Under the pieces are notes generated by a model. The model had not been told where the DNA came from, did no database searches, and saw only the letters and a program-made list of their open reading frames with translations. A DNA stretch of 64,000 bases from Scyliorhinus canicula (taxonomy: Eukaryota), in assembly GCF_902713615.1 (NCBI RefSeq), contig NC_052169.1, positions 18,186,439-18,250,438 on the forward strand. The letters run 5' to 3'. Every line of letters starts with the position of its first letter. Positions within the stretch are counted from its first letter, which is position 1. This document shows positions 6,157 through 60,346 of this stretch, one piece after another. The position numbers and the translations under genes were made by a program.

Positions 6157-6406
6157 NNNNNNNNNNNNNNNNNNNNNNNNNNNNNNNNNNNNNNNNNNNN
6201 NNNNNNNNNNNNNNNNNNNNNNNNNNNNNNNNNNNNNNNNNNNNNNNNNNNNNNNNNNNNNNNNNNNNNNNNNNNNNNNNNNNNNNNNNNNNNNNNNNNN
6301 NNNNNNNNNNNNNNNNNNNNNNNNNNNNNNNNNNNNNNNNNNNNNNNNNNNNNNNNNNNNNNNNNNNNNNNNNNNNNNNNNNNNNNNNNNNNNNNNNNNN
6401 NNNNNN
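6157..6406. other. Assembly gap (250 N)
   Basis: Ns, flanked by CT-rich sequence. Confidence 0.99.
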
Positions 6407-11350: not shown

Positions 11351-11804
11351 TGTCAAAGGATTTCCAGAAGTCCATGTTAACCACATTCACTGCATTTCTC
11401 CATCTACCTTGTCTGTTACGTCCTCAACAGTTTGTCAAGCACATCGGGGGGAATTTTCATTTTTTTCTAGCACAACGGCTCAATGCCAGCTTTTCCATCC
11501 AGACGTTTTGAAACTCAGTCAAAAGAAATCCTGGGGGCGGGTCCCAGGACATCACTCTGACGGGATGGGCTCTGATTGAACCTGCCTACCAGAAACTTCA
11601 AGAGACCCGAGCGCCCTTCGATCCAAACAGAATTAAACTAGAGAGAGGTGTCGTCCCTCCCGGAAATGAGGTGCTCCCCCATAAATACACCTCTCGCTCG
11701 ACAAGCCCCACCAAGCACGCAACCCCCGCCCCCTCCACCAGGAATATCCCCCTCCCCATACAGCTCCCCATTATCTTACCCGCACCTCTACTGGGAACTG
11801 CAAT

Positions 11805-24600: not shown

Positions 24601-24777
24601 CCCAGGGTCTGTGTTCCATCACTTCAGGGAGATGAGCCTGTGTCACCACTGTTAGCGCCTCAATATACAAGTCAGGATGGTGATGATAACCTGCTGTGAA
24701 CTGAGCTCTGTCCTATGCCACAGTCTGACTCCTGTCTTTCTGCCTGAGAGCACGTTTACACCCATCACCTGCACGTG
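21660..24777 (+). mobile_element. Degenerate PIF/Harbinger transposon, truncated by the Gypsy fragment
   Basis: PLLVAVKVTTALNLYTSGSFQG, GVIDGTHV, NRKEFHSLN, IERCIGLLKSRF in broken frames; the left end loosely mirrors the right end near 1300-1353. Confidence 0.8.
22345..22529 (-). mobile_element. V-SINE (paralog ~50283-50462)
   Basis: Same head and core. Confidence 0.75.
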
Positions 24778-28610: not shown

Positions 28611-30727
28611 GTTAGTGGTGTGAAACTCACAGAGAATCAACAGTCAGTTTCCCCCTGTGTCAAATTTTCATTTCAGTCAAAGTCAAAATTGGCAAAGACC
28701 AGTTTCAGCCCCAAATGAACAACCGGCGCATTCTTCAACTGTGTGATCCCACGCTCTGCGTTGGTGAGATTGGAAACGCAGAATGGGTCGGTCTCTTTGC
28801 TTTGTGTTGATAGCCACATAGCCTCAGAACAATCTGTGAAAGCCAAGGAGTTGCTGCCTGTGATTTGATACCATTTACAGAATGCTCCAGAATATTACAG
28901 TCTGCACAAAGTCCTGCGTCTCAAACAGCTTTGGGTCTACGGCTGGTGAAACACACTTGCTCCCGAGGGTGGCAATTAACTCTGGTGTTCCGTGTGGTTT
29001 CCCTTCTCTGGAAATTCTTGGATGAATAGAAAGAAGACTTCCATCTATATAGCGCCATTCACGACCTCAGGACTTTCCAAGATCTTTACAAATTAGTTTG
29101 GATATAATCATTATCATAATGCAGGAAACACAGCAACCAGTTTGCACACAGCAAGTTCCCACAAGCAGCAATCTGATAACGTCCAGATAAAAATCGGCTC
29201 TTGATCGTAATGCCACAGGATCTTTTCAGTCCATCTGACAGAGCAGACAGGTTCAGGACATTGCCTTCAACAATGCAACACTCCCTTGGTGCTGCACTGA
29301 AGTATCTGCCTAGATTATGTGCTCAAATTCCGGATTGTCATTCAGATTTCCCAATATCTATTTTCGACCTGTGAAGTTTCATAGCAGGAGTGGGAACCTA
29401 TAAAATCTCCACACACTCCCAGGTTCAGCATGGCTCCAACAATACTTGTTCATTCGAACTTTTAAAGAGCTTCCCAGTGATAATGGTTTGATTTTCCATT
29501 TCCCTCACTAGCCTTCATTACAGCCTCCCTCACCTGAGTCACAGTTCTGTGCTGTAAGGCCATGTGGGCTGCCCTGGGGTAAACTCATTCCATGTCACGA
29601 TGCTGTGAGCAGTCGACAGAGCAGACTATCCCCTCAACGTTCTGGACTGCGTTTCAGCCAGGGTACCAAGGGGCGAAGGGTGAACGGATATGATACTGAA
29701 ACTACTATCGGTGCAGCATAAACTGACACACAAAGATCACAAGTTCAGGTGATGCAGGAAAAGCAAAGGTCACGCACTGGAACATTGGGGCCTTTACTGT
29801 GTTTGAGGTCCATGCACCTGGTAGGTGTTGAGTGGAGGAAATTGACACTGTGCCAGTTACATTCTGCACCAGTCCTGGGCCTGCTCAATACTGACGATGG
29901 AGCATGGAATTTGGATCCGGGTGTAGCACAAAATGCACACACTCAATTCAGCTGGTGACAAGAGAACAGTGGATTGAACCCATAGCTTATTCTGATTATA
30001 CGTAGCAGCCTGTGGGGTCCCAGACATAATGGGGAGTAAGTTTAGGAGGTGGGTTTATGGGCAGGGGCAACATTCGGAGATAGCTAATCTGGTTTAGGCC
30101 CTGCTGCAAGCATTAAGTGTCTTTATTGGCATATTAAAGAGGCCTAACTCCTGTCTCAGGCAGCTGTCAGAGACCCATTAATATAGCAGCATTGATATGG
30201 TGCCAGACATGTTTCTGACAATTTGGGAATGGTGGGTTGGTCCCTGTAATACCTCTCACCAGACTCACCGGGACACCCTGATTCATCTCCCCATGGGACC
30301 CATGGAATACAAGCTCCCCCGCTATTGGGCGGAGGTCCATCAGCTGGAGCTCGTAAAGATTGCCTCATAATAGCCGGCCCGGACTGGACCCGGCGTGAGC
30401 AGTAGTGACTGGGACCTTGGGATTGCAAGTCACGTTGCAGCCTTTATATTTGTTGTTGAATTAAACTTCTTTTGGATTTACCCTCTCGGGCCTCCTGAGA
30501 TTTCATAGTCCCCTAAATTGGACTTCATTTGCACTATTATTCAGCAGGTAAAATAGTGTAGCAATAACTAATACAACCCCTTCAAATGATCCTCCCCATC
30601 CCAACCCCCACCTTTTAGGTGTCCACAGTGGGAAAGTGTTCAATATCTAGCTCAGAGCATAAATGTAAAATGTTTGTATATTTGTGAAAAAACTTGCACC
30701 ACTATGAATTTAAACTTCTCCTTTTTC

Positions 30728-30993
30728 CTATAACTGATTAAGCTCAGGTGCCTCTGTTTCAGAATAAATAGGGTTTTCTTCCATTTTTAGCGGGCCATGT
30801 TTTGGGTCATTTTCCTCCAGGTGGGACTGTGTCTCCGTGTTTCTGAGACTCCCAGTCTCAGGGTAGCTGATCAAAGAGTAAGCCTGGTCATCAGATGACA
30901 CAATGGGATCTTGCTCTTTCAATGGTGACTGGTCATTGAGTTCAGTGGCTGGAGAGGTTTCAACCTGACGCCCATGGTTCAGGTGGTCTTTGC
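30728..30993 (-). CDS. Copy B exon 10 (QAYSLI, NPIYSET)
   Basis: Paralog of 4967..5232. Confidence 0.8.
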
Positions 30994-33900
30994 CTAGGTA
31001 TTAAGAGAGATCGTGTTTAAGGAGGCTCGCCAGCAATCGGAGGCAAATAATGACAGCGAACAGTTTAGTTCCATGAGATAAAGGTTTAGGAGCTTTCAAA
31101 CAGTTACAGGTTGGATTGTACTGAAAGATTAAAGCTACTTACGTTTCGCTCCCTGGGTTTCAGTTTTGTCTCCATCACTTCGGAAAACAGAAAATGAAAA
31201 ATGTGAAAACTGAGTCACAAAAGATTCAAGTAATATTTTAATATCTCTCATTGGAGTCTTGATTCAGCCACTTTCTCCCCAAGGTCTGGATTTGAACCCA
31301 GCCCAGGCTGAAATTCTCTCATTCACATTGCTTCTCTCTCTCGTTGCTTCTCTGAACCTCTCTGTCTGTCAGTCTGTCTAATTCTCTCCTTGACTTCCTG
31401 TGTCTCTCTCGCTGACACTCTGGCCAAACTGACCAACTGTGGCTGCCGGGGCGGGGGGGGGGGGGGGGGGGGGGGGGATGCGTAGACCTGTGAGGGCAGA
31501 GGGGTGGGGTAGGGTGAACTACACGCTACCAGCCCATCCATTCAGTTGCAGGTGATCCCATAACTCAAAACAAAATGCATGCCAGGCCAAACGCATGTGC
31601 AGAAACAACCAGCAAAGGAAGGAATTGGGGACAAAATCCTTCCCTGGAAGGCCCGAACCACCAGGATACAGGTGAAAGGCCGAAATACGGGACAGTCCAA
31701 CCTGGTCAGGATTTTCTGGCCCAACCAATCATCACGGGCAGGGTGGAAAATTTGACAGACCTGCAAAAGATCCATTGACTTTGAACGGGAGCAGAAAATC
31801 CTCGTCGTGGCTGCCTTTCTTCCTTGTTTCTTTCTGTGATGGGCTCTCTCCACTTCTCTCTCCNNNNNNNNNNNNNNNNNNNNNNNNNNNNNNNNNNNNN
31901 NNNNNNNNNNNNNNNNNNNNNNNNNNNNNNNNNNNNNNNNNNNNNNNNNNNNNNNNNNNNNNNNNNNNNNNNNNNNNNNNNNNNNNNNNNNNNNNNNNNN
32001 NNNNNNNNNNNNNNNNNNNNNNNNNNNNNNNNNNNNNNNNNNNNNNNNNNNNNNNNNNNNNNNNNNNNNCTCTCCCCTTCCCTCACTTCCCTCTCTGTCT
32101 GTCTCTCACTCTGTCTCTCGCAGGGTCCTGTATCGGCAGCCACAGCTGCGAGGGGCACTCCGGGGCCCTGCTAGGCCCCTGCAAAATGGAGAATCACTCT
32201 GGACTACCTCCAGGAAAGTCCAGAGTGATTCGCACCCGTTTTCTCACGGGTGTGGGGACACAGCCCCATTATCATTATCATGTGGGGACAATCAGGCCTA
32301 AAGCTATGATCTGCAGATTTAAACAGATATAAATGGGAAACCCCGAGTGGAATTCTCTGATAATGGGGCCATGTCCCCAAGCCCATTTTGCAGGGGGCTT
32401 GCAGGGCCCCGGAGTGCTCCTCGCAGCTCCGGCTGCCGATATGGGGCCCTGCACTTCCAGCCGCGGGTCCGTGCATGCGCGCGACGGTCATCTGCGGCGG
32501 CGGCCCCATGGAACACCGTAGGCCTGCCCCGCCAATATAGCCCCCCCCCCCAACCGAGATCACACTTGCCAGCTGATCAGTGGCCCCTGATCGTGAGCCT
32601 GGCCGTCCTGGAGGCCCCCCCCCCCCCCGGTGATGGTCCGCAGCCGCCACTCCGAATTCCCGCCGGGTGGAACCATGAGTGAACCATGCCGACGGGAACT
32701 CGGCCAGTTATCGGCAGAGAATCGCCGTGGGGGCCTCTTACAATGGCCCCCAACTGGCACTGTGTGCGTGATTGGCGGCGATGCTTCGGTCCCCGGGGAA
32801 TCGCAGGAGTGGCGTCAGACCCGATCGCGGGTCTGACACACATTCTCCGCCCCCATGCCGAGCGCGATTGCGGCGCGGAGGCTCAGAGAATACCGGCCCT
32901 AACTTTTAAAGTCGGGATTCCCGTCGTGTCAGTGATGGGGACAATCGAGTGGGGAAATTCCACCAGCGTAAAATCCATTTTGGACTCCCGCTCCATACTC
33001 CACCCCCTCTGTTGTTCCTGCCCCCTGAAAACTGGGGTGGCAAATCCTGGTCTATGATTTAAAATTGTTGAATTAATTGTTGAGTCTAGAAGGCGAAAGT
33101 TGAAAGATGAGGGGCGGGATTCTCCCCTACCCGGCGGGGCGGGAGGTCCCGGCGGGATGGAGTGGCGTGAACCACTCCGGCGTCGGGCCGCCCCAAAGGT
33201 GGGGAAATCTCCGCACCTTTAGGGGTCAAGCCCTAAAATTGAGAGGGAGGCGGCGCTGGAGTGGTTGGCGCCACGCCGGCCGGTGGGAAAGGCCTTTGGC
33301 GCCATGCCATCCGGTGCCGAAGGGACTTCGCCGGCCGGCGGAAGTCCGCGCATGTGCCGTAGCGTCAGCGGCTGCTAACATCATCCCCGCGCATGCGCAA
33401 GGGAGGGGGTCACTTCCGCCTCCGCCATCGTAAAGACTATGGCGAAGGCGGAAGGAAAAGTGTGCCCCCACGGCACAGGCCTGCCCGCCGATCGGTGGGC
33501 CCCGATCGCGGGGGCCAGGCCACAGATTGCCCCCCCCCACCAGGACTCCGGAGCCCACCCGCGCCGCCTGGTCCCACCAGTAAGGTAGGTGGTTTGATTC
33601 ACGCTGGTGGGACCGGCATGAAAGCGGCGGGCCGGAGAATCGCCGGGGGGGGGGAGGGGGGGTCCACCCAAAGGCGCGGCGCGATTCCCACCCCCACCGA
33701 ATCTCTGGTGCAGGAGACTTTGGGAGGCAGTGGGGGCGGGATTCACGCCGGACCCCGGCGATTCTCTAACCTGGCGGAGGGGTCGGAGAATCCCGCCCGA
33801 GGTGCTGGTCCTCGAGCTTGCCTTGAGCTTCACTGGAACATTGCAGCAGGCCAAGGCCGGGAGGTCAGGGCAAGGTGGAGAATTAAAATGACAAGTAACT

Positions 33901-36900
33901 GGGAGCTCGGGCTCACACTTACAGACTGAATTGAGGTGTTCTGCAAAATGGTCACCCAGTCTGCATTTGGTGTTCCCCAATGTAGAGGAGGCCACACAAT
34001 GAGCAGCAAATACAATATGTTGGCTACATTGTAAAAGGTACAAGTAGGTTGCTGTTCCACTGAGAGTGAATGTTTGGGGCCTCGGATGGTGAGAATGGAG
34101 GAGATAAAAGGAGAATCCTCAGCCGAGGGGAAAGGAAGACACATTGAAAGTGCTTATATAAAAGGTTACATTGTCCACAAAGATGCGATAGAGATGGAGA
34201 AATTGGAAAAATGAACTGGAGGTGGGAGAAAGTGTAGTCAAGGGAGTGATGCAAGTCAGTGTATTTATAGTATTGGTATCCCAGAAATGGAGGCCGCAAA
34301 GTCAAGGGAGGGAAGTGAAGAGTCAGAGATGGATGAAGTGAAGGTGACAGAAGGGTGGAAATTAATGTAAAGTCAATGAAAGTTTCCAATTCAGAGGGTG
34401 AGAGCTTATAAGGCTGGTCAAAGTGGAGAACAGCCATTGATCAGCATGGAATCCTTCACTATATTAACCATTCTCTAATCCTCCACTCCCCCCTAAAGAT
34501 CACTGTTGTCAGTTCCGGAAGTTGCTGGAGCTGATGTCTGACACTCTGTGTACCTTTTAACTGCTGATTCATCGATCAAACAGTACACATGCTCTGTGGA
34601 GGCAGAGGTAGAGTGGGTGCCCTGTCCTTCTCCAGGCCTTGGCTGGCTCATTGCCGTTGGAACACTGGACACTGCGTACGCAACATGTTCATTTTCATCT
34701 GTCTGTTCCTTCCTGGGAAACACAGAGTATGGTAAACCTAGAAGAAAGGATTGCAACGCAAGGTCTGCTGTCAGTTTCAACTCTCAAAATGATAGGCTCG
34801 GTAATGTTGGGCAGTAATCCTGGTCACTTACATTCGTCCTCCTGTGTCAGTTGCACATCACCGTCCCTACAGTTATTAAAAAATAGATTTGTAAATATTT
34901 CATTAAATGGACAGGACAATGCAGAAATGTCCAAAAACTGAGTGAAAACCCTGCCTACCTCTGTCCGGGTGCCGAGGATCCTTCACAAATGTAACAAGAT
35001 TGGAAAGACAAAGTTAAAAATCTTTGGAAGGAGTCTGCATTAAATATAATTTTCTAGATTTAAATTCAACATTTTATAACTCTGACTTACCTTTGCCCAT
35101 TTGTCGTTTCCGTCTGATTATGCAAATTGCCCCAACAATGCAAATAAGTGCAACCACACACACTATGGCGATGATCACAGGTTTATTTTTACTGTTTAAA
35201 TCTACAGAGGAGAAGCAACATTAGATTCAGGTTGTGCAATCCTGTATTATACGTCAGGTTTCTTACACTGCCTACCTAACTTTCTAGTTACAATCTGGAA
35301 TAGTAAATGGCGAAGGGAGGAAATTGAACCAATTTACAATGGGTACAAACTGTACAAACAGACCCAGAATTTCTCAGCTGGAGTTATTGACATTAAATGA
35401 TTCATATCGCGGATGATGTGTTGGGTAAGCTGGGTCTGCGAGGACTGCGTTTACCATAGCAGTGAGAGAGACAGGCTTCCAACACTTGGAGAAATGCAAC
35501 TCGATTTTATTGAACTACCAACTATTAAACATACTTTAACTGTGGGTTGACACTATGCTGAGTTGACTGAAGACCCGAGGCTAACCTGACCAGACTATCT
35601 TACTACCAGATGGTGTATGTTCTAGTTGCTGCTCACAGGCTCTGGCTGTCTCAGAGGCTGCATCCCAAGAGAGCGGGAAAACTAGTGCCCTCTGGCTTTA
35701 TAGTGGCCGTGTCCTGTCTGGTGGTTGGCTGCTGTGTTCTGTGTTCATTGGTCATCATGTGTGTCAATCAATGTCTGTCTGTGCACCATCATATATTTGT
35801 GTGTATATTATGACAGCTTACTTACTTACTTTCACTTTTGAGAGGAGTTACACTGGTGGTCACTGGAGATATTTTGAGTGTTGAGTTGAGGGTGTCTGAC
35901 GATACACTACTCCAGATTGCAGTCAAGGTTACCTGGTCTGGGGAACTAACATTCCAGGTAGAATCTGGAATGATAAATGGCGAAGGATGGAAATTGAGCC
36001 AGTTTACAACGGCTACAGACTCCCTCAGCTGGAATTCTTGATATTAAATGATTTATATCATATTGTCCATTGTCTGACTTACCGTCACTATTTGTATGAG
36101 TTCCACTGCTGGTCACTGAGGATAATCCAGATGTTGAGGTCACTGAGGATAATCCAGATGTTGAGGTCACTGAGGATAATCCAGATGTTGAGGTCACTGG
36201 GGATAATCCAGATATTGAGGTCACTGAGGATATTCCAGATATTGAGGTTTGAGTCTCCGGAGATTCTGTATTTTCTGTCACAGTGAGGGAGATGTTTGCT
36301 GCAATCTTCCAGACAGGTTTCCCTTTGGCCTGAGCGTGTACAACACAGAGATACCTCCCAGTGTCCATCTCCGTGACTGAGTGAATAGTAAGGTTGTGAG
36401 CCTGGTTTGCATTTGTAGGATTGTGTGAGCTTTGGTTAGAGATTCTTTGTGACAACTTTCTATCCACACAGCATCGTGTGTTAGAATGTACATCCCCTCC
36501 CTCAATATGTACAGAGTGCAGACACTGGTTAATTTCTCCAGATGTGATCCAAAACAGAGTGAAGGGCTGGGATTCTTTATTCTCAAACAGGCAGGGTAAA
36601 GTCACATTCACTCCCTCTGACACTAACGAGGGGTTTTCATCAGTGGAAATTACTTTGTCTGAATCTAGAAACAACATTTAAAAGAATAATTGTTACTCGA
36701 ATAATCTCCAACGTGGTACTTTAGGGGCTGGTTTAGCTCAGTGGGCTAGACAGTGGGTTTGTAATGCAGAACAAGGCCAGAGCACGGGTTCAATTCCCGT
36801 ACACGCTGAGAATTCTGAATTCTCCCTCTGTGTATCCGAATGTGGCGACTAGGGGATTTTCACAGTAACTTCATTGCAGTGTTAATGGAAGCCTACTTGT

Positions 36901-39900
36901 GACAATAAAAGATTATTGTTATTGTCAAAGGATTTCCAGAAGTCCATGTTAACCACATTCACTGCATTTCTCCATTTACCTTGTCTGTTACGTCCTCAAC
37001 AGTTTGTCAAGCACATCGGGGGGAATTTTCATTTTTGTCTAGCCCACCGGCTCAATGCCAGCTTTTCCAGCCAGACGTTTTGAAACTCAGTCAAAAGAAA
37101 TCCTGGGGGCGGGTCCGAGGACGTCACTCTGACGGGATGGGCTCTGATTGAACCTGCCCACCAGGAACTTTAAGAGACCCGAGCGCCCTTCGATCCAAAC
37201 AGAATTAAATTAGAGAGAGGTGTCGTCCCTCCCGGAAATTAGGTGCTCCCCCATAAACACGCCTCTCGCTCGACAAGCCCCACCAAGCACGCAACCCCCG
37301 CCCCCTCCCCCAACCAGGAATATCCCCCTCCCCATACAGCTCCACATTATCTTACCCACACCTCTACTGGGAACTGCAATGCCAGGGGCAGTGCTGGGGG
37401 CAATGCCTGGGGACACTGTCTGGGCACAGTGCCAGGAGGCAGTGTCTGGGGACAGTGCCTGGGGACACTGTCTGGGCACAGTGCCAGGAGGCAGTGAATG
37501 GGGACAGTGCCTGGGGACACTGTCTGGGCACAGTGCCAGGAGGCAGAGTCTGGGGACAGTGCCAGGAGGCAGTGTCTGGGGACAGTGCCGGGGGGAGTGT
37601 CTGGGCACAGTGCCAGGAGGCAGTGTCTGGGGACAGTGCCAGGAGGCAGGGTCTGGGGACAGTGCCAGAAGGCAGTGTCTGGGGACAGTGCCAGGAGGCA
37701 GTGTCTGGGGACAGTGCCGGGGGGAGTGTCTGGGCACAGTGCCAGGAGGCAGGGTCTGGGGGCAGTGCCAGGAGGCAGTGTCTGGGGGCAGTGCCAGGAG
37801 GCAGTGTCTAGGGGCAGTGCCAGGAGGCAGTGTCTGGGGGCAGTGCCAGGAGGCAGTGTCTGGGCACAGTGCCAGGAGGCAGTGTCTAGGGGCAGTGCCA
37901 GGAGGCAGTGTCTGGGCACAGTGCCAGGAGGCAGTGTCTGGGCACAGTGCCTGGGGACACTGTCTGGGCACAGTGCCAGGAGGCAGTGTCTGGGGACAGT
38001 GCCAGGAGGCAGTGTCTGGGCACAGTGCCAGGAGGCAGTGTCTGGGCACAGTGCCAGGAGGCAGTGTCTAGGGGCAGTGCCAGGAGGCAGTGTCTGGGCA
38101 CAGTGCCAGGAGGCAGTGTCTGGGCACAGTGCCTGGGGACACTGTCTGGGCACAGTGCCAGGAGGCAGTGTCTGGGGACAGTGCCAGGAGGCAGTGTCTG
38201 GGCACAGTGCCAGGAGGCAGTGTCTGGGCACAGTGCCAGGAGGCAGTGTCTGGGCACAGTGCCAGGAGGCAGTGTCTGGGGACAGTGCCGGGGGGAGTGT
38301 CTGGGGGCAGTGCCAGGAGGCAGTGTCTGGGGACAGTGCCAGGAGGCAGTGTCTGGGGGCAGTGCTGGGGGGAGTGTCTGGGCACATGCCAGGAGGCAGT
38401 GTCTGGGGTCAGTGCCGGGGGGAGTGTCTGGGCACAGTGCCAGGAGGCAGTGTCTGGGGACAGTGCCAGGAGGCAGTGTCTGGGGGCAGTGCCAGGAGGC
38501 AGTGTCTGGGGACAGTGCCAGGACGCATTGTCTGGGGGCAGTGCCAGGAGGCAGTGTCTGGGGACAGTGCCAGGAGGCAGTGTCTGGGGAAAGTGCTGGG
38601 GGGAGTGTCTGGGGGCAGTGTCTGGAGGCAGTGTCTGGGGGCAGTGCCAGGTGGCAGTGTCTGGGGGCAGTGTCTGGGGGCAGTGCTGGGGGGAGTGTCT
38701 GGGCACAGTGCCAGGAGGCAGTGTCTGGGGACAGTGCCAGGAGGCAGTGTCTGGGCACAGTGCCAGGAGGCAGTGTCTGGGCACAGTGCCAGGAGGCAGT
38801 GTCTGGGCACAGTGCCAGGAGGCGGTGTCTGGGCACAGTGCCAGGAGGCAGTGTCTGGGCACAGTGCCAGGAGGCAGTGTCTGGGCACAGTGCCAGGAGG
38901 CAGTGTCTGGGGGCAGTGTCTGGAGGCAGTGTCTGGGCACAGTGCCAGGAGGCAGTGTCTGGGCACAGTGCCGGGAGGCAGTGTCTGGGGGCAGTGTCTG
39001 GAGGCAGTGTCTGGGGACAGTGCTGGGGGGAGTGTCTGGGCACAGTGCCAGGAGGCAGTGTCTGGGCACAGTGCCGGGGGGAGTGTCTGGGCACAGTGCC
39101 GGGAGGCAGTGTCTGGGGGCAGTGCCAGGAGGCAGTGTCTGGGGGCAGTGCCAGGAGGCAGTGTCTAGGGGCAGTGCCAGGAGGCAGTGTCTGGGGGCAG
39201 TGCCAGGAGGCAGTGTCTGGGGGCAGTGCCAGGAGGCAGTGTCTGGGCACAGTGCCAGGAGGCAGTGTCTAGGGGCAGTGCCAGGAGGCAGTGTCTGGGC
39301 ACAGTGCCAGGAGGCAGTGTCTGGGCACAGTGCCAGGAGGCAGTGTCTGGGGGCAGTGCCAGGAGGCAGTGTCTGGGGGCAGTGCCAGGAGGCAGTGTCT
39401 GGGCACAGTGCCAGGAGGCAGTGTCTGGGGGCAGTGCCAGGAGGCAGTGTCTGGGGGCAGTGCCAGGAGGCTGTGTCTGGTCACAGTGCCAGGAGGCAGT
39501 GTCTGGGGACAGTGCCAGGAGGCAGTGTCTGGGCACAGTGCCAGGAGGCAGTGTCTGGGCACAGTGCCAGGAGGCAGTGTCTGGGCACAGTGCCAGGAGG
39601 CAGTGTCTGGGGCAGTGCCAGGAGGCAGTGTCTGGGCACAGTGCCAGGACGCATTGTCTGGGGGCATGTCGGGGGGAGTCTCTGGGCACAGTGCCAGGAG
39701 GCAGTGTCTGGGGACAGTGCCAGGAGGCAGTGTCTGGGGAAAGTGCTGGGGGGAGTGTCTGGGGACAGTGTCTAGAGGCAGTGTCTGGGGGCAGTGCTGG
39801 GGGGAGTGTCTGGGCACAGTGCCCGGAGGCAGTGTCTGAGGACAGTGCCAGGAGCCAGTGTCTGGGGACAGTGCCGGGGGGAGTGTCTGGGCACATGCCA

Positions 39901-41867
39901 GGAGGCCGTGTCTGGGGGCAGTGCCGGGAGGCAGTGTCTGGGCACAGTGCCAGGAGGCAGTGTCTGGGCACAGTGCCAGGAGGCAGTGTCTGGGCACAGT
40001 GCCAGGAGGCAGTGTCTGGGGGCAGTGCCGGGAGGCAGTGTCTGGGCACAGTGCCAGGAGGCAGTGTCTGGGCACAGTGCCAGGAGGCAGTGTCTGGGGA
40101 CAGTGCCGGGAGGCAGTGTCTGGGCACAGTGCCGGGAGGCAGTGTCTGGGCACAGTGCCAGGAGGCAGTGTCTGGGGACAGTGCCAGGAGGCAGTGTCTG
40201 GGCACAGTGCCAGGAGGCAGTGTCTGGGCACAGTGCCAGGAGGCAGTGTCTGGGGACAGTGCCAGGAGGCAGTGTCTGGGCACAGTGCCAGGAGGCAGTG
40301 CCTGGGCACAGTGCCGGGGGGAGTGTCTGGGGACAGTGCCGGGGGGAGTGTCTGGTCACAGTGCCAGGAGGCAGTGTCTGGGGGCAGTGCCGGGGGAGTG
40401 TCTGAGGGCAGTGCCTGGGGACAGTGTCTGGGGGCAGTGCCGGGGGGGGAGTGTCTGGGCACAGTGCCAGGAGGCAGTGTCTGGGGACAGTGCCGGGGGG
40501 AGTGTCTGGGGTAGTGCCGGGGGGCAGTGTCTGGGGGCAGTGCCAGGAAGCAGTGTCTGGGGGCAGTGCCGGGGGGAGTGTCTGGGGACAGTGCCAGGGG
40601 GCAGTGTCTGGGGGCAGTGCCAGGGGGGAGTGTCTGGGGGCAGTGCCGGGGGGAGTGTCTGGGGGCAGTGCCGGGGGGAGTGTCTGGGGGCAGTGCCGGG
40701 GGGAGGGTCTGGGGGCAGTGGCAGGAAGCAGTGTCTGGGGGCAGTGCCGGGGGGAGTGTCTGGGGGCAGTGCCGGGGGGGAGTGTCTGGGGGCAGTGCCG
40801 GGGGGAGTGTCTGGGGGCAGTGTCTGGGGGCAGTGCTGGGGGGAGTGTCTGGGGGGAGTGTCTGGGCACAGTGCCAGGAGGCAGTGTCTGGGCACAGTGC
40901 CGGGGGGAGTGTCTGGGCACAGTGCCAGGACGCAGTGTCTGGGCACAGTGCCAGGAGGCAGTGTCTGGGGGCAGTGCCAGGAGGCAGTGTCTGGGGGCAG
41001 TGCCGGGGGGAGTGTCTGGGGGCAGTGCTCGGGGGAGTGTATGGGGACAGTGCCGGGGGGAGTGTCTGGGCGCAGTGCCAGGAGGCAGTGTCTGGGGGCA
41101 GTGCCGGGGGGAGTGTCTGGGGGCAGTGCCTGGGGGCAGTGTCTGGGGGCAGTGCCAGGGGGCAGTGTCTGGGGGCAGTGCCGGGAGGCAGTGTCTGGGG
41201 GCAGTGCCGGGGGGCAGTGTCTGGGGGCAGTGCCAGGAAGCAGTGTCTGGGGGCAGTGCCGGGGGGAGTGTCTGGGGGCAGTGCCAGGAGGCAGTGTCTG
41301 GGGGCAGTGCCGGGGGGAGTGTCTGGGGACAGTGCCGGGGGGAGTGTCTGGGGGCAGTGCCGGGGGGAGTGTCTGGGGACAGTGCCGGGGGGCAGTGCCT
41401 GGGGGCAGTGTCTGGGGACAGTGCCGGGGGGAGTGTCTGGGGACAGTGCCAGGAGGCAGTGTCTGGGGGCAGTGCCAGGAGGCAGTGTCTGGGGGCAGGG
41501 CCGGGGGGAGTGTCTGGGGACAGTGCCAGGAGGCAGTGTCTGGGGACAGTGCCAGGAGGCAGTGTCTGGGGGCAGGGCCGGGGGGAGTGTCTGGGGACAG
41601 TGCCTGGGGACAGTGCCAGGAGGCAGTGTCTGGGGGCAGGACCGGGGGGAGTGTCTGGGGACAGTGCCTGGGGACAGTGCCTGGGGACAGTGCCTGGGGG
41701 CAGTGTCTGGAGCACTGTCAGGATACTTACCGGATATAATCCTCCCCCCCCCCCCCTGGGGCTGTATTAACTGTGCCCCCCCCCCCCCCCCCCCCCCTCC
41801 TCCACTCCCCCTGTTCTCTTTACCACATCCCCGTTTGTCAAGCCAACATGACATCACGTCAGCCGGG

Positions 41868-41900
<33 letters not shown>

Positions 41901-44900
41901 ACATGACATCACGTCAGCCGGGTTGGGGGGGGATAACTCAGATGAAATGTGTGACCTGACATTGTGTTAATGGTATTAGGACGGAAGTTGAGATTTTTGT
42001 TCAACCTTCCAACCAGACAGATTGCAAAAGGAGTGGGAGGCTGTGAAGTACCAAGTGTACATTCTGAGTGTGTTTCTGTGCATCAGTGACAGTGAGTAAC
42101 ACCGGGGCAGACCCATCCTTTGAAAAAACGCTGTGATGCAGATACTAACTATCTGAACACTCAAGAGCTTTTAGTCAATGGTAACACTGCATCAACCCCC
42201 TCCATCCACTCTCACAGAGGATTAACATGGAACACAGGTTGAATGTTGGGTCACAATTTCACGTTTCACACGGGTGAGAATGTAACCCATGGCCTGTGAT
42301 TCCACCGGACTGGATCTAAGATAAATTGAAGGTCTGCCTCCCCATGACCTTACCAGCAACAGCCGTCCACATGATTGTCACATGGAAACATTCTTCCCTA
42401 CACCTGTGTTCTAATTTATTTTCACCAGTCTTAGCTCAAATTCCTTGTTCCAGTATCTTAACGTATCTTCAGTAGAGTCTGAACTTGCTGCATGAACGGT
42501 GCTGAATATAATTTTATGATTACTCTTCAGTTCATGTGTGTCACTGGCAATTTGCTATTTGTTGCCCATCACTAGTTGTCGTGGAGAAGTTGATATTCTA
42601 CCTGCCCCGCGGTGTCCATGTGGTGTGGGTACCCCCAAATGCTGTTGGGAGGGAGATCCTGGAGTTTGCCACAGTGAAGGAATGAAGATACAGGCCCCGA
42701 TCTAACCCTGTATCTAACCCGGACCCCGGTGTAAAAGCCTTTTGGGGAATCTTGGGTGGGATTCTCCGCTACCCCGCGAGGCGGGCCGTTCAGGCGCCGA
42801 GGAGTGGCGTGAACCACTCAGGCGTCGGGCCACCCGGAAGGTGCGGAATCCTCCGCACCTTCAGGGGCTAGGCCAGCGCCATCGGAGTTGGCATCGTGCC
42901 AACCGGCACCGAAGGGCCTCCGCCGGCCGGCGTGAGTTGGTGCATGCGCGGGAGCGCCCCCGTCAACCCAGCGCATGCGCAGTAGAGTTATTCTCCGTGC
43001 CGGCTATGGCGGACCGTTAAGCGGCCGGCGCAGAGGGAAAGAGTGCCCTCACGGCACAGGCCCGACCGCGGATCGGTGGGCCCCGATTGCAGGCCAGGCC
43101 ACCGTGGGGGCACCCTCCAGGGCCAGATCCCCCCGCGCCTTCCCTGAGGACACTGCAGGCCGCCCGTAGAGCCAGGTCCCGCCGGTACCGACCTGGTTTG
43201 ATTTACGCCGGTGGTACCTGCCAAAAACAGGTGGCCGCTCGGCCCATCGCGGGCTGGAGAATGGCCGGGGGGGATATTCCTGGTGGGGGATGGGGGGGGG
43301 GGGGGGTTGTGTGCTTGGTGGGGCTTGCCGAGGGAAGGGCGTGTTTATGGGGGAGCTCCTCATTTATAGGAGGGACCAAACCTCTCTTAATTTAATTCTG
43401 TTTGGATCGAAGGGCGCTCGGGTCTCTTGAAGGATTCACTCCGCTCTCCGGCCTAGCGGGGGGGTCGGAGAATCCCGCCCCATGATGGATTCTCCGCTCC
43501 CGCCGCCAATCCCACCTGTCAAAAACATGGGCAGAAAATGCCGGCCATCCTCTTTGGAATCTGTGTTGGTTGCGCCTCACATTCTATTATTTATTTACAT
43601 ACTTGATAATCTCATCTCAGTAAAGAATCTAAAATTGTCCCGAATGCCCACTAACTGTCCTAATGACCCCCGAACATCTCAGCTTAAATCTCTCCAATGA
43701 GCCTGGAATAATTCCCCTGATCTCTCCTGTGCACATACCGCTCAGATCTATCACCAGGAACAGGTCGTAGGTTTCACATCCTTTCTGTGTCAGGCTGGCC
43801 CAGGATGGACATTTTGATGATCCTCCTTTTCGGGTGGAATCTTGAACGGTGCAGGTAAATACCATTGAGTGATCTGGCTTCACAGCAAATGCCTTATCTT
43901 CATTTAATTTGCATTTCTGACACTGCAGTTTCCCTTTCCGATTCTTTTTCCGATTCTTTTTCTGAGGACCGATATTTTCGCAATCACCGTCTCCACGTTG
44001 TTTTCCACATGTTTCCATAGTTGCTGTTTCAGGACTGAAATCACTCATTGTGCACAAGGTTTTTACAGACCCAGCACCGGTACATTGTAGAATGGTGACA
44101 TCTCCTGATCTTCGGGGGAAGAGATAGGTGGATCCTGCAGGGAAAAGGACAGAATCAGATGAAGATAAATAACATTCCACGCAGAAGGATAATTAAATCT
44201 CAATGCCAATCAAAGCCTCGCACAGTAAACGTAAAATTGTAATTTTTGTTACACCACACAACGAGCTGCACAGTTAATTGCTGTTCCATTCATAAATCTT
44301 TGCAATCTATCAATATTTGCCAATTCAGAGCAATAGATTTTACAGAATTTACAGTGCAGATGGAGGCCATTCGGCCCATCGAGTCTGCACCGACTCTCGG
44401 AAAGAGCACCCTGCCCAAGCCCATACCTCCACCCTATCCCCATAACCCAGTAACCCCACCTAACACTAAGGGCAATTTGGACACTACGGGCAATTTAGCG
44501 TGGCCAATCCACCTAACCCGCACATCTTTGGACTGTGGGAGGAAACCGGAGCACCCGGAGGAAACCCACGCACACACGGGGAGAACGTGCAGACTCCGCA
44601 CAGTGACCCAAGCTGGGATTCGAACCTGGGACCCTGGAGCTGTGAAGGATTTGTGCTAACCACTGTGCTACCGTGCTGCCCTGAATAGACTGACTTTTTC
44701 CTGAAGGTAAATAATAATAATGCAACTTCGATCATCATCCTCTCTAAATTTTAAATTGTATTAATTTACAGGATGTGGCGTCACTGGCTTGGGCGGTGTT
44801 TATTCCCCATCCCTAACTGCCCTTGAGATGATGGTGGTGAGCACAGTGCTGCTTCAGTGGGATTTCCACAACTTTGACCCAGTGGCAGTGAAGGAACAGA

Positions 44901-47085
44901 GAAAGGTGGATCCTGCAGGGAGAGGACAGAACCAGATGGAGATAAATAACATTCCACAGAGGAAATATCATTCCAATTCTGTCATCTCCCCTTGATATTC
45001 AATGGCAACAATATTCTCGAGATTACCATTGTTGCTCGTTGTGTTCTCTCTTTAATTGTCTCTGTTTATGGCGGCTAATATGGTCGCCGTTCTTAATTCT
45101 AATTACGTTTGCTCAAGAGTCGCCAGGTATCTCTCGATACCACCACAAGGTTCAAAACCGAATACTGATCAAAGACTCGATACACCAGTTAGTAAGTTCG
45201 AAATCAATGCTCATTTATTTACACACACAGTCAAATATACTCATGCACAAAACTGTACCAACTAAACTATCACTACTACTAAAGCCTATACTTAGCTTCA
45301 GGCGCCCACTCAGTCAGAGGAACAATGGCCGTTGTCCGGTTCTGAGGCTGCTGGGGTTGAGCTGGTACGGAATAGCAGATAAGAGCGTCTGCCTCATAGC
45401 GTGCATTGACTTTGGACTTACCTGTTCTGGTGCAGCTGCTAGGCAGCTCTCTCCTCACTGAGAGCCAAGGCCAAGAGAGCGATTCTCTCTCGGGGGCTTC
45501 TTCTTATACCCAAAGGGGGCTTCGCGCGCTTTTGGGCGGGCCTTGAACTTGGTTCCAATTAATTGGACTGCATCTAGATCATTCCTATCGATTTCCTCCA
45601 ATAAAGGGGTGGCTGCCCTGATCGCTGGGCGGGCCCTAGGTGGCCGTTGGCCTGCTTTGTTCTAGTCTCCTCTGGCACCGGGGTGTCTGCCTTAGTATCG
45701 TTTACCTAAATGTTACCCTTTTGTCCCCGGAGATGGCCCATTAGTATGGCAATGGCTTTGCAGTATCGGCCTAGTCTGGGAGCTACAGCTCCAATCAACA
45801 GACAAACCTTGCACCTGCTTGCTTTCTCAGCATTGTCCATTTTCCCTGCATTCTTTGTAAAGTGTCCATTTTGTAATCGTGACGTGGCCGTCCCAGATGG
45901 CCACACCATTGACCATTGACTGAAGCTCAGTTGGCTGGACAGCTGGTTTGTGATGCAGACCAAGGCTAATAGTGCAGTTCAATTCCGGTACTGGCTGAGG
46001 TTATTCATGAAACTCAACCTTGTCCCTCGCCTGAGGTATGGTGACCCTTAGTTTAAGTCACCACCAGCCAGCTCTTCGCCCCTCAAAGGGGGAAGCAGCC
46101 TATGGTCATCTGGGACTATGGCAAGGTTACCTTTTACATCAAACTGGCTTCCAAGAGCAGGAATTACAAGGCTGGGAATTCTGTGGTGTGTAACTCACCC
46201 CCATGACCTTCAAAACCTTTCCACCATCTGTAAAACAGGTCAGGAGTTGAATTTTGACACAGAAACATGAATATTGCATAGAACAGTACAGCACAGTACA
46301 GCCCCTTCGGCCCACGATGTTGTGCCGACCATTTATCCTAATCTAAGATCAACCGAACCTACACTCCATCAATTTACCGCTGTCCATGTGCCTGTCCAAG
46401 AGTCACTTAAATGTCCCTAATGACTCTGACTCCACCACCTCTGCTGGCAGTGCATTCCACGCACCCACCACTCTCTGTGTAAAGAACCGACCTCTGACAT
46501 CTCCCCTATACCTTCCTCCAATCACCTTAAAATTATGTCCCCCCGTGACAGCCATTTCCGCCCTGGGGAAAAGAATATTGCTGCAAAGTCAGGGTGAAGG
46601 GGATGTATAAACGTGGCAGAATGTGATGAAAATTTGGATTCAATAATACTGAACCATTACTTCTATAAGTATTGTATTTAATTGTGGTTCTTTGCCAGAA
46701 CTAACTGGCCAACTCACTCTCTCTACAGTCCTGTTTCTTTCACAACTTCAAATACTTATCTAATTCTCAGTTAAAAGATGAATGATCTCTGCTTCAACCA
46801 CTGCTTGTCAAAGCATTCCATTGCCCCCACTCTCTGTGTAAAGAATTGCTCCTAGTCTCTCCTCACTCTCTGAATCAAACTGATGGTCCATGATCGCACC
46901 ATGATAAAGTAACACAGCAAACACCATCATTTGACTGTGTTAAACATCTACACAAGAACAGCAATGATTTATATCCTTTTTGTCCAGATGAGGAATATGT
47001 TGAAGATTAATGGAGACTATTCGTCCTTACCTGCAACATGTTGGAACAGGAGAAAAAGACCCAGAAACAAAGTATCGAGAGCCAT
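30728..47085 (-). CDS. Gene copy B: intact 10-exon type I IgSF receptor, ~597 aa (leader, Cys-rich Ig-like D1, V-set D2 + mucin stalk, stalk 2, TM, Tyr-motif tail); CD300/MDIR-like architecture
   Basis: join(complement) 47031..47085, 43739..44134, 36083..36664, 35830..35937, 35091..35201, 34959..34980, 34832..34866, 34554..34737, 31143..31177, 30728..30993 = 1794 nt. All GT-AG, phases 1,1,1,1,1,2,1,2,1 are compatible, no internal stop seen. Confidence 0.85.
31143..31177 (-). CDS. Copy B exon 9
   Basis: Paralog of 5382..5416. Confidence 0.7.
31864..32069. other. Assembly gap (206 N) at the paralogous position
   Basis: Ns. Confidence 0.99.
34554..34737 (-). CDS. Copy B exon 8, Tyr-motif exon
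   Basis: Paralog of 8964..9147. Confidence 0.75.
34832..34866 (-). CDS. Copy B exon 7
   Basis: Paralog of 9242..9276. Confidence 0.7.
34959..34980 (-). CDS. Copy B exon 6
   Basis: Paralog of 9369..9390. Confidence 0.6.
35091..35201 (-). CDS. Copy B exon 5, TM (PVIIAIVCVVALICIVGAICIIRRKR)
   Basis: Paralog of 9501..9611; tgtag acceptor. Confidence 0.9.
35830..35937 (-). CDS. Copy B exon 4, stalk
   Basis: Paralog of 10240..10347. Confidence 0.75.
36083..36664 (-). CDS. Copy B exon 3, V-set D2 + five TSTSGLSSV-type repeats
   Basis: 582 nt, open; Cys-Trp-Cys V-set core with DTGRYLC; N-glycosylation sequons NVT, NQS, NLT, NIS. Confidence 0.9.
37378..41718. repeat. Same minisatellite expanded to ~4.3 kb
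   Basis: Read directly; same flanks as in copy A. Confidence 0.95.
43739..44134 (-). CDS. Copy B exon 2, D1
   Basis: 396 nt, open, same splice sites; within ORF 43629..44180. Confidence 0.75.
47031..47085 (-). CDS. Copy B exon 1, signal peptide
   Basis: Same as copy A exon 1. Confidence 0.85.
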
Positions 47086-49589
47086 TTCAAATTCCACACC
47101 GTCTTTGCTCGGTGAAGAAGTAAAAAAACAGCAGCATGGGGAATTACGAATATTGGTCAAAACGGATTATTTTCTACTACCCGAGTGGTAGGTTCGCCCT
47201 CACATCCTGATCTGTGAGAAAGAGAAGTTGGACTTGCTTCCTGTTTGACCAACTCTGATGAAATGTGTGGCCTGACGTTATGTTAATGGTATTGGGACGG
47301 AAGTTGAGATTTTTGTTCAACCTCCCAACCAAAGAAATGACAAAAGGTGTAGGAGGCTGTGAAGTACCAAGTGTATGTTCAGAGGGTGTTGCTGTGTTTC
47401 AGGTTCCATCCCGCTCTGAGTCACTGTCCGTGTGGAGTTTGCACATTCTCCCCATGTCTGCGTGGGTTTCACCCCCACAACCCAAAGATGTGCAGGATAG
47501 GTGGATTGACCACGCTAAATTGCCCCTTAATTGAAAAAAAAATAATTTGTATATAAAAGAAAGGGGGATCATTACACCAGTGAAAAATAATTGGGCACTC
47601 TAAATTTAAATTAAAAAAAAACATTCTTCCCAACATCTGTGTTCAAATTTATTTTCACCCGGCTTAGTTCAAACTCCTTCTTCAAATTATCTCAATGTAT
47701 CTTCAGAGAGTCTAAACTTGCTGCATGAACGGTGCTCAATATAATTTTGTGATTACTCTTCAGTTCAAGGATATTACTGGCAATTTGCTATTTGTTGCCC
47801 ATCACTAGTTGTCGTGGAGAAGTTGATGGAGAATATTCTACCTGCCCCGCGGTGTCCATGTGGTGTGGGTACTCCCACAGTGCTGTTAGCAAGGGAGATC
47901 CTGGGGATTGCCACAGTGAAGGAATGAAGATAAAGGGCCCGATCTACCAGCCGCAGTGCGCCAGGCGTGAATATGAGTGAGTCGGTTAGCTAGTGGGAGA
48001 GGCCAAAATTGGGAACCACGCTGGGCAGCGATTGGTTTCTGATCTAACTGGCCTGTTCCCGTTGGCAAGATCCAGATCCCGCTGCGGCGTAGTGAGAAAC
48101 CAATAATCACTGATTAAGACCAATCATTAATGTGAAGGACTCCCTATCGCAGTGTTTTCAAACTTTTTTTCACTTTTACCAACCGACGGACCTTTGGGAC
48201 CCACTCCAGCCAACATTCGCAACCCACGCCGGCCAACCTTAGCGACCCACGCCGGCCGACCTTAGCGACCCATGCCAGCCGACCTTTGCGACCCACGCCG
48301 GCCAACCTTAGCGACCCACGCCGGCCGACCTTAGCGACCCATGCCAGCCGACATTAGCGACCCACGCCGGCCAGCCTTAGCGACCCACGCCGGCCAACCT
48401 TAGCAACCCATGCCTGCCGACCTTAGCGACCCACACCGGCCGACCTTTGCGACCCACCATTATTGCTTACCTTTAAAGCGGCAGGTGAGCCTGTTTGGTC
48501 CTCATGATCTCACTTGCTTCGTCATTCAATGTTACATTTCTGCGAAGTCTGACGTCAGCTGACGATTTAAGTTCTTGCTGCATCCTTTGAAAAAAATCAA
48601 GAACTTTGTCTTAGTCTTCAAATGCCATTGAATATTTGAGGGTTTTAAACTTTCATTTGCCAGCACCTCCCTGCATATAACACACATGAACTTTGCATCC
48701 TGACTTCCATTGGCACAATTAAAGCCATACCTCAAGACATCATCTTTATACTGCTTTGTTTCTGATTTCAGTTTCTTCTTCATTGTTTATTCACCAGAAG
48801 TCCTGGAGCTCTGGATACAGCTCACAGCAGCACAGCTTTGTCCTGCTGTGGACTCTCTGTGGAAGCTCTCTCCAGCAGATTCTGTTGTGAGATCCTGGGC
48901 AGTTTGTGTCTCTGCCTCTCTCTTCCTTATTACAAAATATTCCATCTTCAGTTCTTCACACAGTCCTGTTGCTTGCTTGCTGGCAGCTACAAAAAGGAGG
49001 AATCTCTCCTCCATGACTTTCCGCCCAAAGCACAGGCGCACAGGGAGCGTGACATCATATATGTGCTGGGCGCATGACCTTCTCTCAGCTGCTGCCTCTC
49101 GCGGAAAGACTCATTATTCATACTTAAAGGTCTGTCGCAGCCGGCATTCTTTTTTTTACTTTGAAACTTTATTACCAATACCTCATTTTTCTAAGTTTTC
49201 CAAGTGAAACAATTTCAGTTGAACATGCACATCCTTACATTTACACACAAACTTTGTTTTAAATATATTCCCATTTCTTTAGAAATTTGAACAAGTATAG
49301 AAAATGTATGATCTTGTTTTTATTTTGCAAACTATGACTTTAGCCGAGACGAAGTAACTTGTCAAACACACACAATGTCACAATATTTCTTACCGGTTCC
49401 ACTGCATTGCACCATCCAAACATCCAAGTCATCTCCTTCTCCATTCTTACGAAAAGCACTTCAACACTTACATCCTGGATTCCAGAGAGTGGTTACACAA
49501 AGTGATGACTGTGTAGCTTTCTTCCTGACATGTGTCAGCTGCTTTGACTGGCCTCATTTGATCGGTGTTCCTGGCTGACAAACCTGGCC

Positions 49590-52500: not shown

Positions 52501-52903
52501 CAGGAGGTGGTGGTGAGGGATTGGCATGGCCAAAGGACCAGGGAGGCCTCATTCTCATAGCACCTGCTTTGTCTGTCATATCTCCCCCTCTCTCCTTCCC
52601 ACCCACTGTCCCCCATACCCGTGCTCCACCCAGTCTGCCTCCACTTCTCTTTCCCTTCCCCCCCCCGACCATCCCTCCACCCACCAATTACCAGTCACCG
52701 CATCCCCCCTTCCCCTGTCCCACCCTCCCAGGGTCTGTGTTCCATCACTTCAGGGAGATGAGCCTGTGTCAGCACTGTTAGCGCCTCAATATACAAGTCA
52801 GGATGGTGATGATAACCTGCTGTGAACTGAGCTCTGTCCTATGCCACAGTCTGACTCCTGTCTTTCTGCCTGAGAGCACGTTCACACCCATCACCTGCAC
52901 GTG
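49590..52903 (+). mobile_element. Paralogous degenerate Harbinger with a SINE insertion
   Basis: Copy of 21660-24777. Confidence 0.8.
51396..51572 (+). mobile_element. Young tRNA-derived SINE inserted in the Harbinger relic, TSD GAATA
   Basis: A and B boxes intact; absent at the paralogous site ~23450. Confidence 0.85.
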
Positions 52904-59865: not shown

Positions 59866-59897
59866 GCACCGCTATGAATTTAAACTTCTCCTTTCTC

Positions 59898-60163
59898 CTA
59901 TAACTGATTAAGCTCAGGTGCCTCCATTTCAGAATAAATAGGGTTTTCTTCCATTTTTAGCGGGCCATGTTTTGGGTCATTTTCCTCCAGGTGGGACTGT
60001 GTCTCCGTGTTTCTGAGACTCCCAGTCTCAGGGTAGCTGATCAAAGAGTAATCCTGGTCATCAGATGACACAATGGGATCTTGCTCTTTCAACGGTGACT
60101 GGTCATTGAGTTCAGTGGCTGGAGAGGTTTCAACCTGACGCCCATGGTTCAGGTGGTCTTTGC
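59898..60163 (-). CDS. Copy C exon 10 (QDYSLI, NPIYSEM); the rest of gene C lies beyond the window
   Basis: Paralog of 4967..5232, open. Confidence 0.75.
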
Positions 60164-60311
60164 CTAGGTATTAAGAGAGATTGTGTTTAATGAGGCTCGC
60201 CAGCAATTGAAGGCAAATAATGACAGCGAACAGTTTAGTTCCATGAGATAAAGGTTTAGGAGCTTTCAACAGTTACAGGTTGGATTGTACTGAAAGATTA
60301 AAGCTACTTAC

Positions 60312-60346
60312 GTTTCGCTCCCTGGGTTTCAGTTTTGTCTCCATCA
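60312..60346 (-). CDS. Copy C exon 9
   Basis: Paralog of 5382..5416 with splice sites intact. Confidence 0.65.

Follow-up and report, generated by a model that had tools for sequence, protein, structure and literature searches.

The receptors of the CD300/pIgR/TREM group and the skate MDIRs are type I proteins with V-type immunoglobulin (Ig) domains, often carried on a stalk, which occur in variants with tyrosine motifs in the tail or with a charged transmembrane (TM) segment and are encoded in clustered multigene families. The V domains of CD300, pIgR and TREM are marked by a second disulfide, which links a Cys next to the Trp of the C strand to the C' strand. In TIM receptors, a mucin-like stalk carries an N-terminal V domain, which has six cysteines as well as a metal-ion ligand pocket, and is followed by a single TM segment and a tyrosine-bearing tail. 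Siglecs such as CD22 also have tyrosine-based motifs in their tails; their N-terminal V-set domain has an Arg that binds sialic acid and an intrasheet disulfide between strands B and E, and precedes domains of the C2 set. A gene comparable with these in outline is located on a 27.3-Mb scaffold of the catshark Scyliorhinus canicula (assembly GCA_902713615.2), within a stretch of 64,000 nucleotides (the window), in which a preliminary description made from the sequence alone had noted a tandem family of receptor genes and had correctly anticipated a cartilaginous fish as the host. The second of the tandem copies (copy B, the RefSeq locus LOC119956791) encodes two extracellular domains (D1 and D2), a stalk, a TM helix and a tyrosine-rich tail, and its product is probably a surface receptor that signals through phosphotyrosines and belongs to an orphan family within the Ig superfamily (IgSF).

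The preliminary description had assigned the protein to the design of CD300, pIgR and TIM receptors, an assignment that was not upheld, as D2 gives generic Ig matches only and lacks the cysteine signatures of these families. In contrast to the CD300/pIgR/TREM domains, D2 has no Cys adjacent to its core Trp (W38) and has an extra Cys nine residues past it; its pIgR profile matches cover profile positions 80–109 only (the generic E–F strand region), and D1 has no counterpart in these receptors. With no Cys beside W38 and a partial pIgR match, D2 was not counted among the CD300/pIgR/TREM V-type domains. The V domain of the TIM family is N-terminal, whereas in the catshark protein it comes second, is preceded by D1 and contains five cysteines that are arranged differently, and membership of this family was also rejected; no TIM-specific match was present among the listed PDB matches of D2. 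Similarly, D2 exceeds the cut-off of the Ig_CD22 model (33.6 bits; cut-off 27) and the YSxI-type tail motifs recall those of Siglecs, but D2 is not N-terminal, has the canonical B–F cysteines and is not followed by C2-set domains, and the Ig_CD22 match is not reproduced in the orthologue from Scyliorhinus torazame (22.7 bits, below 27), so that the protein was not placed with the Siglecs either. Because only generic Ig matches were obtained, no specific tie of D2 to CD300/pIgR, TIM or Siglec was drawn. The closest likeness is to uncharacterized IgSF proteins in RefSeq, belonging to the same gene or family, which share D1, a V-set D2, a stalk, an uncharged TM segment and a tail with ECxPY(A/S)V; the RefSeq products of S. 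canicula itself have neither leader nor D1 and lack the greater part of D2.

Gene model, annotation and transcription of copy B

An independent rebuild from splice sites reproduced exactly the ten-exon, 597-aa model of the preliminary description, extending on the minus strand from 47085 to 30728 (Table 1); all introns are GT-AG, the exon phases (0, 1, 1, 1, 1, 1, 2, 1, 2, 1) are mutually consistent, and the reading frame ends with TAG. The tail motifs quoted in that description (LPYSVF, VAYAVS, HVYCLI, Q(D/A)YSLI and NPIYSE(M/T)) were likewise all found in the rebuilt model. The encoded protein has a type I layout consisting of a leader, which is likely cleaved after HVAG, a Cys-rich, fast-evolving D1 containing a basic KKNRKKNRKGK insertion, the V-set D2, a stalk rich in Ser and Thr, a TM helix free of charged residues and a tail of 188 aa. 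Ser, Thr and Pro make up 55% of the stalk, and its exon 3 part contains five 27-nt (9-aa) repeats in a tandem repeat at 36111–36248. The product of copy B can reasonably be expected to be a type I membrane glycoprotein of 561–606 aa, depending on the use of exon 4, with a predicted O-glycosylated mucin-like stalk. The predicted junction between exons 2 and 3, which joins D1 to D2, is supported by phase compatibility and by orthologous gene models.

Two isoforms of copy B are present in RefSeq (X1 and X2; XP_038640140/41), both of which are truncated at the 5' end and start at Met250 inside D2. In isoform X1 (357 aa) the acceptor of exon 4 lies at 35964, 27 nt upstream of 35937, and in X2 (312 aa) exon 4 is skipped; at full length, these alternatives would give forms of 606 and 561 aa, which are as likely as the 597-aa form. 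The 3' part of the first tandem copy (copy A) is annotated as "putative GPI-anchored protein pfl2" (GPI, glycosylphosphatidylinositol), a 357-aa product with the same Met start, located downstream of an in-frame TGA. The three RefSeq proteins are matched exactly by exons 3–10 of copies A and B, and the public proteins of S. canicula thus contain neither the leader nor D1, and only the last third of D2. Since Met250 is the sole in-frame Met within exon 3, the truncation is likely due to transcript models that start in or near this exon. The gene is thus mostly invisible to annotation, as had been stated earlier, with the RefSeq coding sequences beginning inside D2.

Transcription was followed in RNA contigs from four runs, compared over 43500–47200, and in four other raw runs, compared over 30700–36699. 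Contigs from three runs of two studies contain the splice between exons 1 and 2: they join 44133/4 to 47030/1 and skip 2896 nt, whose CT..AC ends read as GT..AG on the strand of the gene; this first of the predicted junctions is therefore seen in RNA. Over 43742–44055, the contigs of the D1 exon show no difference from copy B, word depth over D1 is 8–52 against 0–2 in the stretch of intron 2 next to it, and one contig extends the 5' untranslated region to at least 47198. Some spliced contigs (43842–44133, 47030–47162) carry variants that agree with neither of the two copies, such as 43874T and 43895C, 44088C without the 44117T of copy A, or a shorter KKNR repeat region, so that one or more additional paralogues or alleles are expressed.

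Domains and the vertebrate family

The D2 domain is a bona fide V-set domain. It exceeds the Pfam cut-off for V-set (29.8 bits; cut-off 26), and in 31 family sequences C24, W38, D100, Y104 and C106, which belong to the core Cys(B)...Trp(C)...D-x-G-x-Y-x-C(F) pattern, are invariant, with L22, C47, C64 and W118 also fixed in the alignment. Its five cysteines include the canonical B–F pair and an extra conserved pair, C47 with C64/65, at +9 and +26/27 from the core Trp. When the family profile of D2 was compared with PDB sequences, generic Ig matches were obtained, with Robo, CEA, contactin and pIgR matched over the E–F strands and T-cell receptor (TCR) V-alpha over the whole domain.

The D1 domain is considerably more divergent. 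No Pfam or NCBIfam model matched D1 or the tail, and a phmmer comparison of D1 with PDB sequences gave no match. Profile comparison with the N-terminal domains of non-shark relatives (hhalign 93%, E 2.6e-7) aligned the A, B, F and G strands collinearly, and by this measure the shark D1 and the non-shark domain are homologous. Cys17 and Cys94, which correspond to the B and F strands, are conserved in at least 90% of 51 sequences, and a C-strand Trp is present in most members outside the catsharks. With the 51-sequence alignment, AlphaFold 2 produced a D1 model (predicted local distance difference test score, pLDDT, 67.5; predicted template modelling score, pTM, 0.68) with strands in the order A-B-C...E-F-G and a disordered basic insertion, whereas the model from the single sequence reached a pLDDT of 39. 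The best VIA-align matches of the domain (Z 5.0–5.5 over 72–92 residues, 2.5–3.8 Å) are nearly all Ig V-type and include RAGE V, CD79, JAML, 2B4, pIgR D2 and G6b-B; a Foldseek search of the alignment-based model against PDB and Swiss-Prot gave nothing at E ≤ 0.001. In addition, the D1 profile has weak, nearly full-length matches to TCR V-beta, CD226 D2 and CD8-alpha (E 0.005–0.02). On account of the predicted strands, the VIA-align and profile matches and the conserved B/F cysteines, the earlier reading of two Ig-like domains was accepted, with D2 as a V-set domain above its cut-off and D1 as a strongly divergent one whose matches are weak.

A phmmer search with D2 against 1.84 billion representative sequences gave 104 matches, in many of which D2 starts near residue 150, and E values against family members range from 1e-110 to 1e-11. 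Full-length two-domain orthologues, each termed "uncharacterized protein", are present in S. torazame and ten other sharks, and the two-domain form was counted in 12 shark species overall. Outside the sharks, proteins that combine a signal peptide, D1, a V-set D2, a short stalk, a TM segment without charge and a tyrosine-bearing tail were identified in sturgeon, gar, teleosts, lungfish, newt, axolotl, caecilian, frogs, turtles, crocodilians, lizards, kiwi, duck, echidna and platypus. For example, members are found in Carcharodon (LOC121271932), Rhincodon (LOC125487102), Chrysemys (LOC101950452), Alligator (LOC112550110), Anas (LOC101792197), Tachyglossus (LOC119931841) and Ornithorhynchus (LOC103166618), as well as in S. 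canicula (XP_038640142). All members are unnamed or carry automatic misnomers, and searches of the literature for the family LOC identifiers and for MDIR found nothing relevant. No batoid protein was among the named matches, and no therian homologue was found in searches seeded with the echidna and turtle proteins, in which a word prefilter limits sensitivity.

The tail of nearly all of 39 other members, and of the window copy, starts with (D/E)ECxPY(A/S)V, which is followed by a YS(L/V)-hydrophobic motif and then, near the C terminus, by NxxY in sharks and bony fishes or TVYxxV/L in sauropsids; tail length is approximately 160–190 aa in sharks and 65–130 aa in other members. By homology, the window gene is placed in an orphan D1-D2 receptor family that extends from sharks to monotremes. 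The two-domain form that had not been recognised in the preliminary description is thus indeed unnamed and uncharacterized, and no full-length match to a characterised gene was obtained, but the form is not specific to sharks. Domain shuffling is seen among the relatives: one Heptranchias gene model has the order D1-D2-D1-D2, reptile RefSeq isoforms skip D1, and some isoforms of the sawshark Pristiophorus skip D2. The doubled domain order and the isoforms without D1 or D2 all fit a design in which the cassette exons are of phase 1.

Tandem copies and intron contents

Self-comparison of the window revealed a tandem unit of approximately 26–28 kb with 95–99% identity between copies, comprising copy A (~1677–27440), copy B (27440–55566) and copy C (from 55566). 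The leftward continuation that had been proposed is confirmed by positions 1–895, which match 23921–24777 and 52046–52903; three copies are also confirmed, although copy C is limited to exons 9–10 within the window, its remaining exons being either past the right end or undetected. Copy A retains all ten exons with intact splice sites (Table 1). However, an in-frame TGA at 10886–10884 in its D2, where copy B has CGA at 36476–36474, ends the protein early, at residue 216; the change looks like a CpG transition, and copy A is likely a pseudogene.

Copies A and B differ at dS 0.037 overall, where dN and dS are the rates of nonsynonymous and synonymous substitution. The tail is the most constrained region (dN/dS 0.28). 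In D2, the ratio is 1.96 (20 nonsynonymous and 3 synonymous changes), which falls short of significance (p = 0.21), with the nonsense codon of copy A as a confounding factor; positive selection on this domain was accordingly not claimed. Shark ectodomains form a tree in which the paralogues of one species fall together (S. canicula A and B, three S. torazame, two Mustelus and two Pristiophorus genes), a pattern that points to recent lineage-specific duplication or homogenisation. Because of this grouping and of the nonsense codon, birth-and-death turnover was favoured over simple expansion, and of the "expanding" cluster described earlier the young tandem duplication stands, with one of the two complete copies disrupted.

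The window also contains several features that lie outside the coding exons. An inverted segment of ~409 bp at 14725–15133 in copy A copies the region around the D1 acceptor, with 98% identity to copy B 44035–44443 and 95% to copy A 16103–16518, and hints at exchange between copies. Transposon relics are present between the genes at 51892–52290, 53779–54574 and 58535–59869, and comprise a fragment of a Harbinger-type DDE transposase, a Ty3/gypsy-like RNase H/integrase fragment and a reverse-transcriptase fragment of a long interspersed nuclear element (LINE); the LINE fragment is a ~1.3-kb insertion found in copy C only, immediately 3' of its stop codon.

Intron 8 of copy B contains an assembly gap. 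The reading frame does not depend on it, because the RefSeq proteins of copy B join exon 8 straight to exon 9, residue for residue, and the proteins of eleven other shark orthologues align without gaps through this junction. A scan of intron 8 for an extra cassette exon gave chance candidates in repeats only, and none is proposed. Copy A has an assembly gap at the homologous position (6157–6406), and both gaps adjoin GA/TC-rich low-complexity sequence; their occurrence at one homologous place suggests a simple repeat that is hard to assemble. The minisatellite in intron 2 of copy B, which has a homologous array of about 1.6 kb in copy A (11800–13374), is strongly GC-skewed and open in all six frames, with spurious open reading frames of up to 862 aa. 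Four intronic stretches (33100–33900, 35300–35900, 44244–44739 and 45100–46600), to which large numbers of RNA reads and contigs align on either strand with 95–99% identity, are dispersed transcribed repeats rather than exons of the receptor gene.

Table 1. Coordinates of gene copies and other features in the window
Feature	Position	Strand	Content
Copy B exon 1	47031..47085	-	ATG and signal peptide (MALDTLFLGLFLLFQHVA-G); donor GTAAGG
Copy B exon 2	43739..44134	-	D1, 132 aa, 9 Cys, phase 1 at both ends
Copy B exon 3	36083..36664	-	V-set D2 (~36662-36270) and start of Ser/Thr stalk
Copy B exon 4	35830..35937 (597-aa model, 108 nt) or 35830..35964 (135 nt)	-	Second stalk exon, alternatively spliced
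Copy B exon 5	35091..35201	-	Uncharged TM helix (VIIAIVCVVALICIVGAICII) and RRKRQ stop-transfer signal
Copy B exon 6	34959..34980	-	22 nt, cytoplasmic; exact match to RefSeq proteins
Copy B exon 7	34832..34866	-	35 nt, cytoplasmic
Copy B exon 8	34554..34737	-	Tail motifs ECLPYSVF, HVAYAVS, EHVYCLI
Copy B exon 9	31143..31177	-	35 nt, cytoplasmic
Copy B exon 10	30728..30993	-	Tail motifs QAYSLISY, ENPIYSET, then TAG stop
Assembly gap (N)	31864..32069	.	Inside intron 8, between exon 8 (end 34554) and exon 9 (start 31177)
Minisatellite	37385..41710	.	26-nt G+C-rich unit, ~168 copies (4.3 kb), inside intron 2 of copy B
Copy A exons	19159-19105, 16202-15807, 11080-10493, 10347-10240, 9611-9501, 9390-9369, 9276-9242, 9147-8964, 5416-5382, 5232-4967	-	All ten exons, splice sites intact
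Copy C	59898..60345 (about)	-	Exons 9-10 only, within the window

Signalling, alternative readings and significance

The core of the preliminary description stands after this analysis: the gene does not rearrange, lies in a young tandem duplication and encodes a type I IgSF receptor in which two Ig-like domains are combined with a mucin-like stalk, a TM segment without charge and a tyrosine-rich tail. In the receptor as proposed here, the membrane-distal pair of D1 and D2 would be held out by the stalk and would bind a ligand, while the tyrosines of the tail would be phosphorylated and would recruit adaptors with Src homology 2 (SH2) or phosphotyrosine-binding (PTB) domains. NPIY is a PTB-type or endocytic motif, and ENPIY is conserved in all sharks compared. 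A signalling role of the tail is argued from its being the best conserved part of the protein, as it is 93% identical to that of S. torazame, compared with 72% for D1, and is also under the strongest constraint between copies A and B. Since the TM helix is uncharged, no partner of the DAP12 or FcR-gamma type would be expected, and the sign of the signal could be inhibitory or activating. The locus itself evolves by recent duplication and loss, which left copy B intact and copy A with a nonsense mutation.

Several observations weigh against this reading. No canonical immunoreceptor tyrosine-based inhibition motif (ITIM; (I/V/L/S)xYxx(I/V/L)), switch motif (ITSM; TxYxx(V/I)) or activation motif (ITAM) was found in the copy B tail by a regular-expression scan. 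Confidence in the D1 model is moderate, and known structures match it weakly (Z ≤ 5.5; Foldseek E ≥ 0.05). The overall dN/dS between copies A and B is 0.92, which is consistent with copy A being a pseudogene. The four raw RNA runs have less than 1x depth on exons 3–10, with repeat-derived reads and no junctions; this low depth is uninformative and is not evidence of silence. No read crossing the D1–D2 junction was seen in the RNA data examined.

The tail motifs also bear on the proposal, made in the preliminary description, that the receptors are inhibitory. As a classical leukocyte receptor of this kind, the protein would recruit SHP-1, SHP-2 or SHIP through ITIMs and dampen activating receptors, and the uncharged TM segment, the long tail with many tyrosines and a rapidly changing ectodomain in a tandem, fast-turnover locus, which is typical of immune receptor clusters, all agree with such a role. 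Some orthologues even carry canonical motifs: ITIMs are found at the first motif in S. torazame (LPYSVI), Carcharodon (LPYSVV) and Rhincodon (VAYSVV), and several reptile members have a C-terminal ITSM (TVYEVV, TIYALV). However, the motifs of copies A and B fit neither ITIM nor ITSM, and neither copy has an ITAM; those of copy A differ from those of copy B only in QDYSLI and NPIYSEM, of which neither fits and the second adds a YxxM, and neither copy was therefore classed as ITIM-bearing. Furthermore, the TM segment is essentially uncharged across about 40 family members, and in none of these is a charged TM segment combined with a short tail, as would be expected of an activating counterpart. 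An inhibitory leukocyte receptor is thus a putative and rather unlikely reading. The related claim that the uncharged TM segment argues against pairing with DAP12 or FcR-gamma was sustained, and the lack of an ITAM together with the long tail likewise sets the protein apart from activating receptors that pair in this way, which have a charged residue (K, R or D) in the TM segment and either a short tail or an ITAM.

A less probable alternative is an adhesion or endocytic receptor of the mucin type with no specifically immune role. Its basic D1 would bind anionic ligands such as glycosaminoglycans, nucleic acids or lipids, and NPxY would drive clathrin uptake or the binding of PTB adaptors. The Ser/Thr/Pro content of the stalk, the strongly basic D1 insertion and the conservation of ENPIY in sharks are in line with this role, as is the presence of the RAGE V domain and G6b-B, reported binders of anionic ligands such as heparan sulfate, among the best structural matches of D1. 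The basic insertion is, however, poorly conserved outside sharks, NPxY is replaced by other tyrosine motifs in tetrapods, and the structural matches are weak, which together make this alternative improbable. A decaying array of transcribed relics without function in S. canicula, as might be suspected from the nonsense codon of copy A, the overall dN/dS of ~0.9, the very low depth in four RNA runs and the truncated RefSeq reading frames, is very improbable in view of the intact 597-aa frame of copy B with its ten exons and perfect splice sites, the constraint on its tail within and between species, the exact match of spliced RNA to its D1, and the position of Met250, which may explain the RefSeq truncation.

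A broader version of the phosphotyrosine-signalling reading can be put forward tentatively, in which the family would be an ancient orphan receptor lineage extending from sharks to monotremes, with a tail code (ECxPYAV...YS(L/V)hydrophobic...NxxY) that is neither ITIM, ITSM nor ITAM, and with the Cys-rich, basic D1 as a ligand-binding module of a new kind, derived from an Ig domain; D1 and D2 could be used singly or together, since both are encoded by phase-1 cassette exons. If true, the vertebrate repertoire of surface receptors would include a class that has so far gone unrecognised. The receptor is not categorically new, and represents a distinct, unstudied variant of the IgSF receptor theme.

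For the catshark, the analysis corrects the annotation, in which two RefSeq genes are truncated at the 5' end, one bears the wrong name of a fungal-type GPI protein, and one copy is likely a pseudogene. More generally, it defines an unnamed IgSF family that is conserved across jawed vertebrates, with no therian among the named matches, and that is characterised by an unusual D1 and a multi-tyrosine tail outside the ITIM, ITSM and ITAM rules. Comparative immunologists and cell biologists are thereby given a concrete and testable orphan receptor, for which the ligand of D1 and D2, the adaptors of the tail and a possible loss in therians can be pursued.

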